A DNA stretch of 7,174 nucleotides. Origin: Octopus sinensis. Its lineage: Eukaryota. Below are positions 1-7,174 of the stretch, piece by piece. Positions within the stretch are counted from its first letter, which is position 1, and every line of letters starts with the position of its first letter. Position numbers and translations under genes: made by a program. The notes under the pieces were generated by a model. It saw only the letters and a program-made list of their open reading frames with translations. It did no database searches and was not told where the DNA came from. Location of the stretch: contig NW_021828941.1 of the NCBI RefSeq assembly GCF_006345805.1, positions 1 through 7,174 on the forward strand. Reading direction: 5' to 3'.

Positions 1-1660
1 GCTCTCTGCGTGGCTGAGGCCATGTTGAGAGGGCCATTTGAACAGTAGTGGTCCCAAAACAGTGACCTGCGGAACACCGCTCACTATTTGCGTGTTAATG
101 GAAGTGGCCCCGGGTTACTACCACCTGACTTCTATCCTTCAGAAAGTCATGAAGCCATTCTCCAATTTTCCAACTATACCAACATCACGCAGTTTGTGAC
201 ATATCATTCCATAATCGACTTTATCAAAGGCCTTTGCAAAGTCGAGATATATCACGTACCACATTTGTGTGGTTGAGCAGTCGTTTCAGCCCAGTCATAG
301 TGTTGTAGGAGCTGAATTAGCAGTTCTTCCTGGTCGGAAACCATGTTGGGTGTCAGGCAGCAAGTTATTTTCTTCAAGGAAGGTGATTAGTTTCCTTCTG
401 ACTATTCGTTCCATTGACCTTGCTGATGTTGTGAGGTCAGAGAGATAGGTCTGTAGTTCTTGGCCTCCGCTCTGCTACCTCCTTTATGAATAGGGCATAT
501 TTTACCTTCCTTCAGTTTTCTTGGAAGTTTGCCAGTTGCAAGGAAGCTCTGAAAGAGGAAGGAACTGCAGTAGTCTTGCTAGGACTCTCTTACATACTTT
601 TAGAAGGATCGCCGGGGGGAATCCATCGGGGCCAGTAGCTGAGTTTGTTTTCATTTCATCTATAGCCTTTATTACATCGTCTTCCTTTATATTGATTTAA
701 TCAATCATCGCTGCCTCTGATTTTATATCTGCAGTGGTAAGAAGTCAGTTAGATTGCTGATTTGGAAATGCCAAGAGGTGGAGTGAAAACACTCTTGAAT
801 GCTCAATTAGTATTTCACTTACCCTCATTGGATTTCCTGTGAGTGTGCCATCCTTTTAAGGAGTGTGCCCATCCTACAGTGCACCGTAGCTGTTTCTTTG
901 GCATACATGTAGAGAAAGCTCTGGTGTTAGATTTTATGTTGTCTATAGCCCAGGCTTCTTTGTCTGCACTTTCCTTTTCATGGAGAGAGTGCAGACATTT
1001 TTCGATTTCCAACAGTTCTATTCAGGCGGGGACTTTTTCACTGCTTTCAATTTGTTTGTTTAGCCGATTTGAAACTTTTGTACGCACCGTTCATTAGAAT
1101 TTTCCTCTCTCTGGGGATTTCGTTCTTGTGTACAGTGGCCTTTCTCTCTGGGACACCATTGTAGCATATGGCTTGCATTACAGACATGAAATGTTGAAGT
1201 TTCATGTCGATGTCTGGCGAGGAGAGACATTAGGCCAGTTTTGTTTGAGGATCTCTTCTCAATTTGTTTCCAGTTTGCCTTATGGAAGTCAAGCTGGAAG
1301 ATTCTGAGAGTTTCTTGTAGGCTGCATGCCATGCTTTCCTTTGGCCGTACATGGTCAGCTCTACCATGTTGTGATCCGAGAGTAGTGTCGGTGTCACTTT
1401 CACATTATGGATGAGATCCATATATTTGTGAGGTGAAGCAGAGATCTAGTATGTACCTGCCCTGTTGGTTGAGTAGTGGAGTACTTGCTCCATGTACAGG
1501 GTGTTGATGAGGTTCAGGAGGGACCCCGCTGTCCTCGTTCACATCGTGTCATTACTGGGAGAGAAAGGCTCGGGCCATCTGAAATTAGGTAGATTGAAAG
1601 TCTCTCATAATAAGTACACTTATGTGTTGTTCTAATGTGACTAGAACTTCTATTTTTATA
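1..1660 (-). mobile_element. Degraded CR1/L2-group LINE ORF2 (APE endonuclease C-terminal half, linker, RT domains up to motif 4); runs off the left edge
   Basis: Hand translation of the minus strand across several frameshifts gives motifs in the expected order: VLIMRDF(N)LPNFRW (GDFN-like, 1593-1605), ILDLCFT, LSDHN (SDH, 1371-1379), DFHKANW, NIKSNTRAF, ATGPDG (GPDG at 622-633), NYRPISLTS (432-458), QHGFRPGR (325-348), YLDFAKAFDKV (217-249), GVPQVTVLGPLLF (40-78). The YADD motif should lie just beyond position 1. Non-LTR RT identity is firm; CR1 versus L2/Crack assignment is by motif recollection only. Confidence 0.85.
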
Positions 1661-1668
1661 CGGCAGTC

Positions 1669-1704
<36 letters not shown>
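1669..1704. repeat. (TA)n microsatellite ending in AA
   Basis: Directly visible; abuts the 5' end of SINE F1 copy A. Confidence 0.95.
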
Positions 1705-1706
<2 letters not shown>

Positions 1707-2003
1707 GGAGGCGCAATTGGCCCAGTGGTTAGAGCAGCGGACTCGAGGTCGTAGGATCGCGGTTTTCGATTCCCAGACCGGGAGTTGGTGTGTTTATTGA
1801 GCGAAAAACACCTAAAAAGCTCCACGCAGCTCCGGCAGGGGGGGGGGTTGATCTCTACTGTACCTTTCACCACTATTTCTCTCACTCTTTCGTTGTTGGC
1901 CTGCTCGCTTAGCCAGCGGGGGTGGCGTCATTCGATGGCTAAAACGAACGCATTGTGACCAGCGATGTGTAGCAATATCTGATGGTCTGGTCGGTCACGT
2001 GAT

Positions 2004-2011
<8 letters not shown>
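1705..2011 (+). mobile_element. tRNA-derived SINE, family F1, copy A (full length)
   Basis: A box TGGCCCAGTGG (1718-1728), B-box-like GGTTTTCGATTCC (1761-1773), 3' end GGTCACGTGATCACGTGAT. A second, similar copy lies at 5755-6046 on the minus strand (roughly 85% identical by eye). Confidence 0.9.
1718..1773 (+). promoter_or_regulatory. Internal RNA Pol III type-2 promoter (A and B boxes) of SINE F1 copy A
   Basis: TGGCCCAGTGG matches the TRGCNNARYGG A-box consensus. GGTTTTCGATTCC resembles the GTTCGANNC B box with extra T residues. Confidence 0.7.

Positions 2012-2052
<41 letters not shown>
2011..2052. repeat. (TA)20 microsatellite ending in AA
   Basis: Directly visible; ends TATATATAAA like the tract at 1669-1704. 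Confidence 0.95.
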
Positions 2053-2053
<1 letters not shown>

Positions 2054-2061
2054 AAAGTGAA

Positions 2062-2096
2062 GATGTAAGGTAATGGGGCGAGTGTGTCTCCCTGCA
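2062..2096 (-). mobile_element. Orphan ~35-bp fragment of RTE RT motif 4 (QGDTLAP)
   Basis: 2072-2096 is a 25/25 exact direct repeat of 4228-4252 (AATGGGGCGAGTGTGTCTCCCTGCA); 31/35 identity when extended to 2062. Confidence 0.8.
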
Positions 2097-2108
2097 TAAT
2101 AATAATAA

Positions 2109-2407
2109 GGAAGAAAGAAAAGTTGAGAGATATAACAGGTTAGATTGGGAAGTTAAGCAGTTGTGGTCGATAAAAAAGGTGGTAGTAGTACAATAATTGT
2201 CGGAGTCCTGGGAACAGATGAGCAAAATCTCGAGAAGTACGTGGAACAAATAAGGGCTGCAATAAAGGTGGAGGCTTACAGAAAACATCACTGCTTTGAC
2301 CGTCGAATACACCGGAAGGTGCTCGACAAAATAAGGAGGTGTTACCTAGTTAATGGAATGAACAGCTGGAAAATGAGTACATATCCAGGGTTGAAAGTGG
2401 GCAAAGG

Positions 2408-2408
<1 letters not shown>
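2109..2408 (+). mobile_element. 5'-truncated 3' end of an R4/Dong-clade (restriction-like endonuclease) non-LTR retrotransposon
   Basis: With frameshifts it reads EERKVERYNRLDWEVKQLWSIKKVVVV / IIVGVLGT..KNLEKYVEQI..IKVE / LQKTSLL / RIHRKVLDK. This matches my recollection of the R4/Dong/Rex6-type ORF C-terminus (KYxDLxxExxxLWxxxxxxVxPIxxGALG...LQKxxLLGTAxILRKVL). About 70 nt of 3' UTR follow, then (AAT)n; (TAA)4 lies directly upstream at 2097-2108. Confidence 0.7.
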
Positions 2409-2439
<31 letters not shown>

Positions 2440-2549
2440 TAATAATAATATAATAATAATAATAATAATATAATAATAAATAATAATAAATAATAATAAT
2501 AAATAATAATAATAATAATAATATATAATAATGATAATAATAATCATTG

Positions 2550-2584
<35 letters not shown>

Positions 2585-2588
2585 AATG

Positions 2589-2621
<33 letters not shown>

Positions 2622-2773
2622 TAATAATAATAATAATGATAATAATAAATAATAATAATAATAATATAATGATAATAATAATAATAATAATAATATAATG
2701 ATAATGTAATATAATAATAAATAATAATAATAATATAATAATATATAATAATATAATAATAATGATAATTAAT
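2409..2773. repeat. Long imperfect (AAT)n microsatellite (~365 bp) with GAT variants and 1-nt indels
   Basis: Directly visible; source of the spurious poly-Ile/Tyr/Leu ORF 2350-2799. Confidence 0.97.
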
Positions 2774-2988
2774 GAAAAAGAATAAGAAAGAAAATCCAAA
2801 TTATAGAGACGAGAAAGATAGGTCTAGAAAAAAAAAAACATGAAAACGTAAGAGCGAAGCATTTGTATGGGCACACAAGCTGAGAATTAAGATGGGGGCC
2901 AAAAGAAAGTTAACCCTAAACGAATCATGAGAAAGGCGAAGAAGAAAGGAGAAAATAATTGAAGCCATAAGTGATTATAGGGCGAAGT

Positions 2989-3151
2989 TATATATTATAA
3001 TATATATAATATTATATATTATATATATTATATATATATATATATATAGATATAAGATATTATATATATAGATATATATATAAATATATGTATATATATG
3101 TAGATTATATATATATACATATGTAATATTTATATGTATGTATATAATATA

Positions 3152-3196
<45 letters not shown>

Positions 3197-3233
3197 GGTA
3201 TGTGCGTGTGTATATATAGATTAGTATATATAT
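2989..3233. repeat. Compound (TA)n/(TG)n microsatellite
   Basis: Directly visible. Confidence 0.93.
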
Positions 3234-3385
3234 ATTCTCTTTAATATTACTCTTTACTTGTTTTAGTTCATTTGTCTGCCGGCCATGCTGGAGCACCGCC
3301 CCAGGACTTATTCTTTGTAAGCCTAGTACTTATTCTATCGGCCGCCTTTTGCCGAACTGCTAAGTTACGGGGCGTAAACACACCA
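3234..3385 (-). mobile_element. tRNA-derived SINE family F2, 3' portion (left half of a copy split by the RTE insertion)
   Basis: Ends at TAAACACACCA (3375-3385), which recurs at 4888-4898 where SINE-like sequence resumes; short CTCTTTA tail repeats at 3237-3256. Contiguity of the two halves matches a common octopus SINE as I recall it; not checked against a library. Confidence 0.7.
3375..3385 (+). repeat. Left target-site duplication TAAACACACCA
   Basis: Identical 11-mer at 4888-4898; extends to 15 bp with one mismatch (TAAACACACCA-T/G-CAT). Confidence 0.85.
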
Positions 3386-4577
3386 TCATCATCATTGTTC
3401 GACCGTGGTCGAGACACATGCAATTTTTACTATGTTACGCCAGACTTAACGGTCAATCATAGCATTACGGAGGTCCCGTGGCTGGATGCCTGTATCCCTG
3501 GAGATTACATCAGTGTTTGAGATACCCTCTGGTATCGCGAGCAGATGGCTTCCAGAGGAGAAGAGTAAAAATTACCTCGTTTTCAGCTCCACAACAATGT
3601 CCAGCAAGAGATGACACAGGTGGTAGTTTCCCATATATTTGTACTTTGGTTGGATGAAGCTTCCACGAGAATTTTTGAGCTCTCATAAGGAGGCGAGTGT
3701 AAGTTCCATCCAACCACCTCTCAAGCTTCTTTGATAACATCCAGGTTTCTGAGCCATATAGTAGAATTGGTTCGACTGATTTAACTTTGAAATCTCTACT
3801 TAGATTTGATGACCAGATCTTATGCATATCATTACAGGCTGACCAGGCCATACCCTTTCTAGTTAGAAAATCTTTTTCAGATGATGATATGTATGACCCA
3901 AGATATTTGTAATCAGAAACCATATTTAAGAGCGTATTGTTGAGAGTATGGATGATGAAATCACTGTTGGACAGGCATTTGTTTACATATTCAGTCCTGG
4001 ACTCATTGAGGTAAAGACCTACACAATTTGAGGCTTGTTCAAGAGATTGTAAAAGAGACTGGGCGTTGGAGAGGGAATCACTGATAAGAGCGATGTCGTC
4101 AGCAAAGTCAGTGTCTGTTAAGTATTCAGCTGGGTGTCTGGAACTTCTAGGTTTTATTTCAAAGCCCTTACCAGAAATGGTATCAACTGACATACGTAGC
4201 ACATAGTCAACGACAATGATGAAGAGAAATGGGGCGAGTGTGTCTCCCTGCAGTATTCCGGCTCTGATTGAGGAAGATGATGTTTCCCCATCAGGGGATA
4301 AGATGATTGAAGACGTATCTGTGTAGAGGACCTTGATGGCAGAAATGATTTTGTCTGGAATCCCATAGAGCTTAAGGATTTCAAACATCTTCTACCTATC
4401 TACAGAGTCGAACACTTTAGAAAAGTCTAAGATCGCGATTAAATGCTTTTGATTCTTCAATGAGTCTGCGTAGGCATAGTATTTGGCTCAACGTGAGCGC
4501 CCATGTCTGAATCCATTTTGGTTCTTTCGGAGCAAAGGTTCAACAAAAGGGACGAGACGGTTTAGAATCAGTTTGTT
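3386..4577 (-). mobile_element. RTE-group LINE, 3' segment (RT domain to (TGA)n tail)
   Basis: Minus strand: NKLILNRLVPFVEPLLRKNQNGFRHGRS (NQNGF 4509-4523), TLSQILCLRRLIEE, DFSKVFDSVDR (4395-4427), LQGDTLAPFLF, DFADD (4095-4109), YKYLGS (3894-3911), LLYGSETW, AGHC, then DVISRDTG...STTVEQ followed by TGATGATGA (3394-3386). Confidence 0.9.
3510..4388 (-). pseudogene. Open 292-codon stretch of RTE ORF2 (RT core and C-terminal region); non-functional fragment
   Basis: ORF track entry carries LQGDTLAPFLF, FADD and YLGS motifs. It is preceded by an in-frame TAG (4392-4394), lacks the endonuclease and ends at a frameshift. Confidence 0.85.
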
Positions 4578-4887
4578 CTAATTCTCCAAATGTCATCGAA
4601 CCCAGAAACCATCTAACGTCTATATCACTAGCTTACCACCGTTCTCCATTCCAGTCACTGAAGATCTAACTCATAACTGCCAAGAAGAATCTTGATGATG
4701 CTTACTTGAACGCCGAGGTCGAATTTGTCAACGGCAAAATTAGCAAACTATCCAAAGAGCACATTAGTAAAAAATACCATCTTGCCTGGAAATCCATCAA
4801 AGACCTATCAGGCAAAAATTCTGGGTCATCAATTAGAATCAAAGGGGGATCAGCTAAGAAGCGTTTAGAAAATTGGTCAACTCATTT
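4578..4887 (+). mobile_element. Inverted 5' segment of the RTE-type ORF2 (EN-RT linker region)
   Basis: One plus-strand frame reads NSPNVIEPRNHLTSISLAYHRSPFQSLKI*LITAKKNLDDAYLNAEVEFVNGKISKLSKEHISKKYHLAWKSIKDLSGKNSGSSIRIKGGSAKKRLENWSTHF(K), with a single stop at 4667-4669. This resembles the WKxIxxLSG...WxxHF linker that precedes the RT in such ORF2 proteins. It lies inside the TSD pair. Confidence 0.75.
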
Positions 4888-4898
4888 TAAACACACCA
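4888..4898 (+). repeat. Right target-site duplication TAAACACACCA
   Basis: Identical to 3375-3385. Confidence 0.85.
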
Positions 4899-5041
4899 GC
4901 ATTGGTTGTCAAGCGATGTTGGGGGGACAAACACAGAAACACAAGGCACCAACACACACACACACACACACACACTTATTTATATAACATATATACGATA
5001 CGACCGGCTTCTTTCAATTGCTGGTCTGTCACCAAATCCAC
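4888..5041 (-). mobile_element. SINE family F2, continuation (middle portion with internal (AC)n/(TA)n and diverged central domain)
   Basis: Resumes the SINE interrupted at 3385; (AC)n at 4952-4975; 4999-5041 is a diverged copy of the motif at 5149-5189. Confidence 0.65.
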
Positions 5042-5090
5042 GATCGTACCAATTACCGAAGATAATTCTTGTTGCTTACTTTGATTATAT

Positions 5091-5094
<4 letters not shown>

Positions 5095-5150
<56 letters not shown>
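5095..5150. repeat. (TA)n microsatellite
   Basis: Directly visible. Confidence 0.97.
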
Positions 5151-5151
<1 letters not shown>

Positions 5152-5314
5152 GACTGGGCTTCTTTTCAGTTTCCGTCTACCAAATCCACTCACAAATCTT
5201 TGGTCGGCCCGAGGCTGTAGTAGAAAACACTTGGCCAAGGTGCCACGCAGTGGATTGAACCCGGAAACATGTGGTTGGTAAGAAAGCTACTTACCACACA
5301 GCCACTCCTACGCC
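5149..5314 (-). mobile_element. SINE family F2, tRNA-derived head plus central domain
   Basis: Minus strand starts GGCGTAGGAG; A-box-like TGGCTGTGTGG (5304-5294), B box GGTTCAATCC (5261-5252), then GGATTTGGTAGACGGAAACTGAAAAGAAGCCC ending in (TA)n. Confidence 0.85.
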
Positions 5315-5317
5315 TAT

Positions 5318-5366
<49 letters not shown>
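5315..5366. repeat. (CA)n(TA)n compound microsatellite
   Basis: Directly visible. Confidence 0.95.
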
Positions 5367-5423
5367 AATTATATACCCATCCACACGAGTGATGGCCATC
5401 TATATGTACCAGTATAGGTCGTA

Positions 5424-5460
5424 TGTGTGTGTGTGTGAGAGAGAGAGTGAGAGGGAGAGA
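5424..5460. repeat. (TG)n(GA)n compound microsatellite
   Basis: Directly visible. Confidence 0.9.
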
Positions 5461-5684
5461 TTGGAAATGCGCGGTGCCTATTATAATGTTGTTCAGTTAA
5501 AGATTAGAGATAAAGTGTCTTAAGAAGTTTATGTGGTATAATCTATTTTGGGCCGGAAATGAGTTAATTGAAGAAATCTTAAACAATATTACAATATAGA
5601 GGTCGCTCCGTACGTTACAGCGACGGATGTTCCATTTGATCAGCTGAACAGCCTAAGTTTTGCTTCCAACAACAACAGGTTCCC

Positions 5685-5715
5685 GATTCAGTAGGCGGAA
5701 ACTAAAAGAAGCCCG

Positions 5716-5719
<4 letters not shown>
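5685..5719 (+). mobile_element. Isolated fragment of the SINE F2 central domain
   Basis: GATTCAGTAGGCGGAAACTAAAAGAAGCCCGTATA aligns with the reverse complement of 5149-5186 (GATTTGGTAGACGGAAACTGAAAAGAAGCCCAGTCGTA). Confidence 0.7.
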
Positions 5720-5751
<32 letters not shown>

Positions 5752-5754
5752 ATA
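5716..5754. repeat. (TA)n microsatellite
   Basis: Directly visible. Confidence 0.95.
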
Positions 5755-6046
5755 ATCACGTGATCACGTGACCGACCAGTAGTTACACATCACTGGTCAC
5801 AATGCGTTCGCATTGTTTTAGCCTTCGAATGATGGTATTGTAAGTGAGCAGGCCAACAGAAGAAAGAGTGAAAGAAAGAGTGGTGAAAGAGTACAGCAGG
5901 GATCACCACCCCCTGCCGGAGCCTCGTGGAGCTTTTTTTATGTGTTTTCGCTCAATAAACACTCACAACGCCCGGTCTGGGAATCGAAACCGCGATCCTA
6001 CGACCGCGAGTCCGCTGCCCTAACCACTGGGCCATTGCGCCTCCAC
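5755..6046 (-). mobile_element. tRNA-derived SINE, family F1, copy B (full length)
   Basis: A box TGGCCCAGTGG (6034-6024), B-box-like GGTTTCGATTCC (5991-5980), same GGTCACGTGATCACGTGAT 3' end; colinear with 1705-2011, with two small internal deletions. Confidence 0.9.
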
Positions 6047-6047
6047 A

Positions 6048-6113
<66 letters not shown>

Positions 6114-6236
6114 CATATATATATTATATAAATATATATATATATTGTATATAAATAATAATAATGATAACAAGCAACACACAACAACAACAACAACAAA
6201 ACAACAACAATAATAATTAATAATAATAATAATGAT
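6047..6236. repeat. (TA)n/(TACA) tract followed by (AAT)n/(AAC)n compound microsatellite
   Basis: Directly visible. Confidence 0.93.
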
Positions 6237-7174
6237 AGGGAGTATAACTCCGAACTTACAGGGAAAAATTCAATTTAGTATTAAATTAAATTTCACAACA
6301 TATATAAAAATATATATATATATAAAATGTGTAATTAGATATAAGAGAACAAAATGTACGGATGCCGCTATATATATATACATACATACATACATATATA
6401 TATATTCGATTCGATTCGTTTCGTTTCGTATCTTCTTCTTCTCTAAGCTGGTTTATATATATTATTATATATATATATATACATATATAATATATATATA
6501 TAATACAAAATGGGGCAAGAACGCAAAACATCCGGACAACTAGGTGATACAAAAAGGGACAACAAAACATCCAGATAGACGATACTAAAAAACAAGGACG
6601 GGTCATTCTACCCTCAGTCAAGAACCGGATCATCCTCGCAATTTCGTCTGATTAATCTTGAGATTGCTCCAATTTGACCAGCCCCAATGAAAAACTAAGC
6701 TAAGAGCATTAGATTCCTTGGAGGAAAGCATCGAATGTATACGAAAACAAGGGCGGAAAACATATATAAATTAGAGAAAAACCACTATAATGTAATTCAA
6801 ACAAGGATAGACGTAAAACATACCATATAGAAAAAATAAAATATTTTATAAACCATATGTCTAGAGCACAATAAAGAACATAATTATAAACCGTATATAA
6901 TTAATAAATAGACTACATACGTTTCGTGGCTGTAGCTTCAATTCGAATTCGAATTAAATTTAAATATAATCGATCCAAAAACAATTCAATTTAAAAGTAT
7001 AGTCACTTCTCAGGGGAGCAATAATAACAATATTAGTTAGATAAATACATAGTGTTAATAAATAATCAAAGAGAATTAAATATTTCTTAAAGAAATAAAA
7101 AATGCTTCTTAAAGAATATAAACACGAAGAAATTCCGTTAACTAAATTTTAAACGTAAAAAGGAGGTCCAAGTG
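6237..7174 (-). mobile_element. Possible Penelope-like element terminal (pLTR-type) non-coding sequence, fragmented
   Basis: AT-rich and non-coding, with internal imperfect repeats (6503-6601) and a hammerhead-like CUGA..GAAG / CGAAAC motif on the minus strand (7013-6911), a motif class associated with Penelope-like elements. No GIY-YIG or RT sequence is visible, so the call is tentative. Confidence 0.35.

Follow-up and report, generated by a model that had tools for sequence, protein, structure and literature searches.

How can two pieces of one retrotransposon come to lie on opposite strands within a single target-site duplication (TSD)? We address this question for a stretch of 7,174 nucleotides from Octopus sinensis (contig NW_021828941.1, positions 1 to 7,174; "the window" below), which contains at 3386-4887 an old copy of a long interspersed nuclear element (LINE), apparently of the RTE type, whose upstream part is inverted. 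Twin priming is the textbook mechanism for such structures in L1, and Ostertag and Kazazian (2001) reportedly described it for 5'-inverted L1 insertions. We consider it likely, at a probability of roughly 0.8, that an RTE-type LINE produced the octopus insert in a single retrotransposition event, and that twin priming resolved this event.

Anatomy of the insert and of the undisturbed element

The insert is bounded by an exact 11-bp direct repeat, TAAACACACCA. One copy is at 3375-3385 and the other at 4888-4898, and they enclose 1502 bp. All 1502 bp are homologous, end to end, to one LINE family, and the repeat coincides precisely with the two independently defined ends of that homology. The match extends to 14 of 15 bases (TAAACACACCA[T/G]CAT). 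We calculated from base composition that an 11-mer match within ±5 nucleotides (nt) of the two fixed boundaries has a chance of about 7e-5. We also shuffled the two 61-nt boundary neighbourhoods, and none of 2000 shuffles reached a shared word longer than 10. Within the window, the TAAACACACCA pair is among only a few exact 11-mer repeats that are not simple sequence.

The segment beside the left-hand TSD copy is on the minus strand (4577-3395). It starts with NKLILNRLVPFVEPLL and encodes a 5'-truncated reverse transcriptase (RT) and the C-terminal part of open reading frame (ORF) 2, from NKLILNR to ...STTVEQ. The Pfam domain RVT_1 was detected in this segment (E=3.7e-23). Its amino acid identity to the best database relatives is 67-75% (75% to P0001), and its nucleotide identity to positions 548-1800 of the related contig L003 is 76.5%. 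Its relatives in the PDB are L1 ORF2p and R2 only. Several in-frame stops and frameshifts show that the segment is decayed.

Between this coding sequence and the TSD is a microsatellite tail (3386-3394) that reads TCATCATCA on the plus strand; that is, (TGA)3 in the sense direction. The stop codon of the ORF, right after ...STTVEQ, is the first TGA of the tail (3394-3392), and the TSD comes directly after the tail. Because four relatives end alike (L003, L004, L005 and L006 all finish in ...GTCGA(A)C(AA)(TGA)n), we take a (TGA)n tail with the stop codon as its first unit to be a feature of the family. In the sense direction the TSD starts with TG, which prolongs the TGA repeat and gives 2 nt of microhomology at the 3' junction.

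The other segment (4578-4887, 310 nt) is on the plus strand and corresponds to the ORF2 linker upstream of RT (NSPNVIEP...ENWSTHF). It encodes NSPNVIEPRNHLTSISLAYHRSP...KKRLENWSTHF; the full translation is NSPNVIEPRNHLTSISLAYHRSPFQSLKI*LITAKKNLDDAYLNAEVEFVNGKISKLSKEHISKKYHLAWKSIKDLSGKNSGSSIRIKGGSAKKRLENWSTHF, with one in-frame stop. This translation has 79% identity to P0121 across its whole span, and 73% to residues 1-75 of P0008. At the nucleotide level the segment is 82% identical to L001, 80% to L002 and 85% (85.6%) to L003. We detected no Pfam domain in 4578-4887, and found neither a tail nor a TSD belonging to this segment alone. The 3' end of the family and the (TGA)n tail are carried by the minus-strand segment only, and the single 11-bp duplication encloses both segments.

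The two segments meet in a characteristic way. The 3'-most end of the inverted segment (...ENWSTHF, ending at 4887) adjoins the TSD at 4888, and its 5'-most end (NSPNV..., starting at 4578) adjoins the truncated RT (NKLILNR) at 4577. An earlier reading of this DNA from its letters alone (the sequence-only reading) had recognized this inversion-plus-deletion layout as the geometry of twin priming. It had also described the 11-bp TSD around a 1502-bp insert, the RT segment on the minus strand, the linker segment on the plus strand, the (TGA)3 tail, and the match between a primer end CA and that tail. All of these features held up in our comparisons.

We found that both ends of the inverted segment can be placed to within a few bases. 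The inversion junction (4577-4580) was aligned on both sides to L003, L004 and L005 and to L001, and was also judged from the residues that precede NK(L/M)ILNR in about 60 relatives. The RT side is homologous to L003 up to 4577, and the inverted side is homologous to L001 down to 4577-4578 (TCTaAtTCTCC in the window and TCTcAcTCTCC in L001). No base is left unassigned between 4577 and 4578, so filler DNA is absent from the junction. Base 4577 is compatible with either segment, giving one unambiguous shared base, or up to four if one mismatch is accepted. Plus-strand tblastn matches run back to 4541-4547 and would let the inverted piece begin within the RT segment. We rejected this start as weak alignment extension; homology to RT is strong there.

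The outer junction reads ...TGG TCA ACT CAT TTT/AAA CAC ACC A in the window. At the corresponding point L001, which has WSTHF as the window does, reads CATTTTAAA, and L002 and L003 read CATTTCAAAAAC; the family sequence is CATTT(T/C)AAA, and K comes right after HF in many relatives. Because the relatives read CATTT(T/C)AAA, the bases TAAA at 4888-4891 (or AAA, if the source element read TTC) belong to the element and to the target alike. That is, the start of the TSD, TAAAC, shares 3-4 nt with the element, and 6 of 7 when the following AAC is included. Microhomology at this point was part of the sequence-only reading, and the relatives bear it out.

What does the element look like when it is not rearranged? 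We compared ten related copies, on contigs from public assemblies (L003-L006 and L010-L015). The two stretches are collinear and on one strand in eight of them (L003, L004, L005, L011, L012, L013, L014 and L015), and in L003 they are also in one reading frame. The other two (L006 and L010) are plain 5' truncations, cut before the linker stretch. Because the relatives are collinear, the arrangement in the window is a derived one, an inversion with a deletion within one family. Four database proteins (P0008, P0015, P0019 and P0024) are uninterrupted ORFs with the linker followed by RT on the same strand, in the order ...HF-KNLLGK...GPDNIP...NYRGISL...AKIY-NKMILNRL... and then RT.

These comparisons also define what is missing from the window. 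Window positions 4742-4894 map to 44-196 of L003, and 4577-3381 map to 548-1800. In P0008 the inverted piece corresponds to residues 1-73 and the RT piece to residues 193-604; the respective positions in L003 are 44-189 and 548-1790. The missing part is 119 codons (357 nt; P0008 residues 74-192, L003 190-547) and holds the GPD and NYRGISL motifs, in agreement with the expectation that "a few hundred nt" of ORF2 with GPD and NYRxIxL were absent. The best relatives of the RT segment (P0001 and L003) and of the linker segment (P0128) belong to the same subfamily. Both segments are decayed to a similar degree, and their distances to L003 are similar (85.6% identity for the inverted segment and 65-85% in 150-nt windows for RT), which suggests that they are of similar age.

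Assignment of the element to the RTE type is by hallmark architecture, and is well supported but not proven. The endonuclease part is missing from the copy in the window, and the architecture of the complete ORF was tested on relatives only: these have one ORF of ~1000 amino acids (1000-1100), with an N-terminal apurinic/apyrimidinic (AP)-type endonuclease and then RT. Endonuclease, linker and RT are collinear over about 2.6-3.1 kb in L012 and L015, and L004 has a 985-amino-acid gene with Exo_endo_phos and RVT_1 domains. We found no ORF1 in the relatives within the contigs examined, and there is no CCHC zinc knuckle after RT in the C-termini of P0008 and P0001. The 3' untranslated region (UTR) is very short, with tandem repeats in place of poly(A): ...VEQ is followed by TGA TGA TGA and the TSD. 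The same kind of very short tandem-repeat 3' UTR has been described for RTE-2_OV, an RTE element of Octopus vulgaris (PMC9115989).

Probable twin priming and its alternatives

The layout and strand polarity of the insert are exactly those that priming from a second-strand nick would give. We infer the responsible enzyme and the sequence of events as follows. The endonuclease would nick the plus strand of the window after ...TAAACACACCA, and the CA at the resulting 3' end (the last plus-strand bases of the 3375-3385 copy) would pair with the UG of the (UGA)n tail and serve as the first-strand primer. The first cDNA would run from the tail to the N codon of NKLILNR (1192 nt, now 3386-4577). Its extension would begin TCATCATCA..., the complement of the RNA tail, as in ordinary target-primed reverse transcription.

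The opposite strand would be nicked 11 bp away, freeing the 3' end ...GTGTTTA-3'. This end (...TGGTGTGTTTA-3' on the minus strand, the complement of the 4888-4898 copy, whose polarity was worked out from the sequence) would be the second-strand primer. It would anneal within the same RNA, or a sister RNA, at UAAA(AAC), just past the codons for WSTHF, and a second cDNA would run from there toward the 5' end of the RNA (310 nt, now 4578-4887). The bases added to ...TGGTGTGTTTA-3' would be AAATGAGTTGACC..., complementary to the RNA immediately upstream of UAAA. The two cDNA ends would then be joined without filler, with loss of the ~357 nt of RNA between the copied stretches, and gap repair would yield the 11-bp TSD. 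Before the insertion the site would be expected to read ...GGGGCGTAAACACACCAGCATTGG..., with one TAAACACACCA and then GCATTGG. The copy has since decayed and is without function.

Several points weigh against twin priming. Because we have only one copy, which is old and mutated, we had to deduce the source element's junction bases from relatives with 80-85% identity. An oppositely oriented piece is absent from all ten related copies (0/10), which thus give no sign of frequent inversion. In the searchable collections we found no paralogue, allele or orthologue of the flanks in which the target site could be seen empty. A DNA pattern with a gap across the target site had 0 matches in JGI metagenomes; a conserved repeat word from the flank gave chance matches only, in bacterial contigs, and none in viral contigs. 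The peptide read across the joined flanks has no words in common with any database protein, the flank peptide in the reverse frame, searched exhaustively with HMMER, returned low-complexity matches only, and no flank words were found in the text of published papers. L004-L006 were also used for the TSD length of the family. The 10-mer in L005 may be due to chance, and the TSD of the L006 copy is unreadable because that 5'-truncated copy sits inside a satellite of tandem 10-nt units, GACTTCTTAA (L006 9818-9910 and 11050-11180).

The present sequence would also result from an inversion plus deletion that happened later, if one breakpoint fell exactly on the 5' end of the insert. It is possible to imagine a conventional 5'-truncated RTE insertion, starting from NSPNV..., in which the first ~310 bp were subsequently inverted and ~357 bp were deleted. 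A simple flip of the 5' end gives the same order and orientation of the pieces, the region is rich in microsatellites, and a copy this old, with several stops and frameshifts, has had time to be rearranged. But one breakpoint must then have hit the boundary between insert and target exactly, within the four shared bases, and the same event must have deleted 357 bp at the other breakpoint. In addition, there are no inverted repeats at the breakpoints that could have driven a flip; the best inverted pair in the region (24 nt, 71%) lies elsewhere. Second-strand priming predicts the bases that are shared at the outer junction. Based on these considerations, we regard a later inversion as unlikely.

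The remaining explanations do not attribute the two segments to one insertion. Repeats are common sites of misassembly, and the contig could wrongly join two opposite RTE copies at ~4577/4578. However, the two segments cover different parts of the element and have no sequence in common by which an assembler could be misled, and if two loci had been joined into a chimera, the outer flanks would not carry matching exact 11-mers; for both reasons misassembly is very unlikely. Alternatively, a plus-strand RTE fragment might have come to lie beside a minus-strand 5'-truncated RTE copy in two separate events, or by ectopic recombination between opposite copies. Nested and adjacent fragments of transposable elements are indeed frequent in the window. 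Yet the plus-strand piece has neither the 3' end and tail that a target-primed insertion requires nor a repeat of its own, and one 11-bp repeat brackets both pieces. Homologous recombination is ruled out because the join links non-homologous positions of the element. We therefore give an origin in two events or by ectopic recombination hardly any credence. The sequence-only reading had named a plus-strand piece from another family, or with its own TSD or tail, and inverted repeats around the flipped segment, as findings that would speak against twin priming, and neither was seen.

Repeats around the insertion

The window is AT-rich, repeat-laden eukaryotic DNA, and tracts of TA, AT and CA border nearly every repeat in it. 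Two of the microsatellites are very long: ~121 AAT units at 2409-2769 and ~100 TA units at 2989-3189. We found no tRNA or other known RNA in the window with ARAGORN and Rfam, including in an inverted pair of ~380-nt repeats (1670-2050 and 5716-6081). The members of this pair are 84% identical, are bordered by (TA)n, and enclose the RTE locus.

A module resembling a short interspersed element (SINE), (TA)n-ACGGGCTTCTTT-CAGTTTCCG-CTACCAAATCCAC, occurs three times, at 4995-5041, at 5150-5190 and, as the reverse complement, at 5685-5725. The distal right flank of the RTE insertion is the first of these occurrences, so the insertion lies in repetitive DNA. Only that distal part of the flank (4995-5041) matches a repeat module elsewhere in the window; the SINE target named in the sequence-only reading is putative.

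A second LINE fragment, of a different family, is on the minus strand at 1-1640. It is heavily frameshifted, has an RVT_1 match (1.4e-10), and retains motifs of the endonuclease (SDH near 1370) as well as GPDG near 620 and YLDFAKAFDKV near 230. This fragment is cut off by the start of the window, ends at a (TA)n tract, and has no nucleotide similarity to the RTE copy. An ORF fragment on the plus strand at 2163-2400 (...GGSSTIIVGVLGTDEQNLEKYVEQIRAAIKVEAYRKHH...) has no Pfam match and may be a remnant of another mobile element.

Two further observations concern the RTE family. Positions 2072-2096 are an exact 25-nt copy of 4228-4252 (an RT motif, LQGDTLAP). They share the strand of the RTE copy and stand alone between (TA)n and (AAT)n tracts. 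Because related elements differ at 3-7 of the 25 positions, this short copy probably derives from the RTE copy in the window or its closest kin. In addition, a JGI protein of 531 amino acids (P0005) contains a tandemly repeated internal RT block, with the junction ...SLEKASNS/VDRDNIFEIL... occurring twice. The block could reflect a tandem array from the interior of an RTE element, or it could be an assembly artefact.

Comparison with L1 and other LINEs

If the insert arose as we propose, then an RTE-clade ORF2 protein probably primed cDNA synthesis from both nicked strands of the target in a natural, non-mammalian germ line. Twin priming would then not be peculiar to L1 and to mammalian host factors. 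It might instead be a general outcome for LINEs with an AP endonuclease whose staggered nicks leave an overhang of ~10 nt or more. The mechanism itself is already known; its extension to a distant LINE clade and to a non-mammalian host would be what is unusual. Among the matches listed, the open-access literature on twin priming concerns nearly always L1, with none on insertions of another LINE family, and we found no report of twin priming by an RTE element in the open-access literature searched. This agrees with the remark in the sequence-only reading that there is little documentation outside L1. One decayed copy cannot tell how often RTE elements twin-prime. For annotators of such genomes, the locus is a warning that a single insertion may underlie adjacent fragments of one LINE family that have opposite orientations.

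The insertion resembles those of RTE-clade LINEs (RTE-2_OV, Bov-B and the plant RTEs) in that its relatives have a single ORF with an AP-type endonuclease and RT, and in that the start of the TSD prolongs the repeat of the tail. In contrast to these, the copy in the window is truncated and inverted. It also lacks the Tn-TA signature of plant RTEs and Bov-B, a stretch of thymines ~10 nt upstream of a TSD that starts with TA (PMC6007223, PMC13295347). In the sense direction the octopus site is ...GACAACCAATGC/TGGTGTGTTTA, with no stretch of T and with a TSD that starts TG. Absence of the signature is not disqualifying, because other animal RTEs show different patterns (PMC6007223, PMC13295347).

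The octopus insertion has much in common with L1 insertions attributed to twin priming. In both, opposite segments of one element lie together with the upstream segment inverted and its 3'-most end at the 5' TSD. Both have a TSD of normal length around the two segments (11 bp here, 10-20 bp for L1), and a tail on the non-inverted segment only. Microhomology of a few bases marks the 5' junction, the inversion junction lacks filler, and the intervening part of the element is missing. Among 5'-inverted L1 copies, microhomology at the 5' junction is found in 95% and is mostly 2-5 bp; at their inversion junctions microhomology is common and extra nucleotides are rare (PMC2912911). The two cDNA ends lie >20 bp apart in over half of L1 inversions (PMC12016303).

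There are also differences from L1. The octopus element has a single ORF whose stop codon begins a (TGA)n tail, whereas L1 has ORF1 and ORF2 and a poly(A) tail. The first primer here would pair with UG(A) and not with poly(A), and the host is not a mammal. The inverted structure is found in 18-31% of young L1 insertions, in contrast to one of the 11 copies that we examined.

The length of the overhang may be relevant to which LINEs can twin-prime. L1 inversions are tied to TSDs of 10-20 bp, and an overhang of ~5 nt has been proposed to be too short for second priming (PMC4245944). In cell assays of three LINEs, 5' inversions were found only with human L1 in human cells and in one insert of Nimb-2_DR; no inversion was found with ZfL2-1, which makes ~5-bp duplications (PMC4245944). 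The conclusion from those assays was that 5' inversions depend on the LINE species and on the host, perhaps on an overhang that is long enough to anneal (PMC4245944). The octopus insertion, with its 11-bp TSD, a 3-4 nt match where the second primer would anneal and an inversion junction free of filler, is compatible with this idea. The 5'-inverted insert of zebrafish Nimb-2_DR is similar to it in being an inversion of a LINE other than L1 and in its TSD of ~12 bp (PMC4245944). That insert was obtained experimentally, from an element of another clade, in chicken DT40 cells. In contrast, the insertion in the window is fixed in the genome of its own host.

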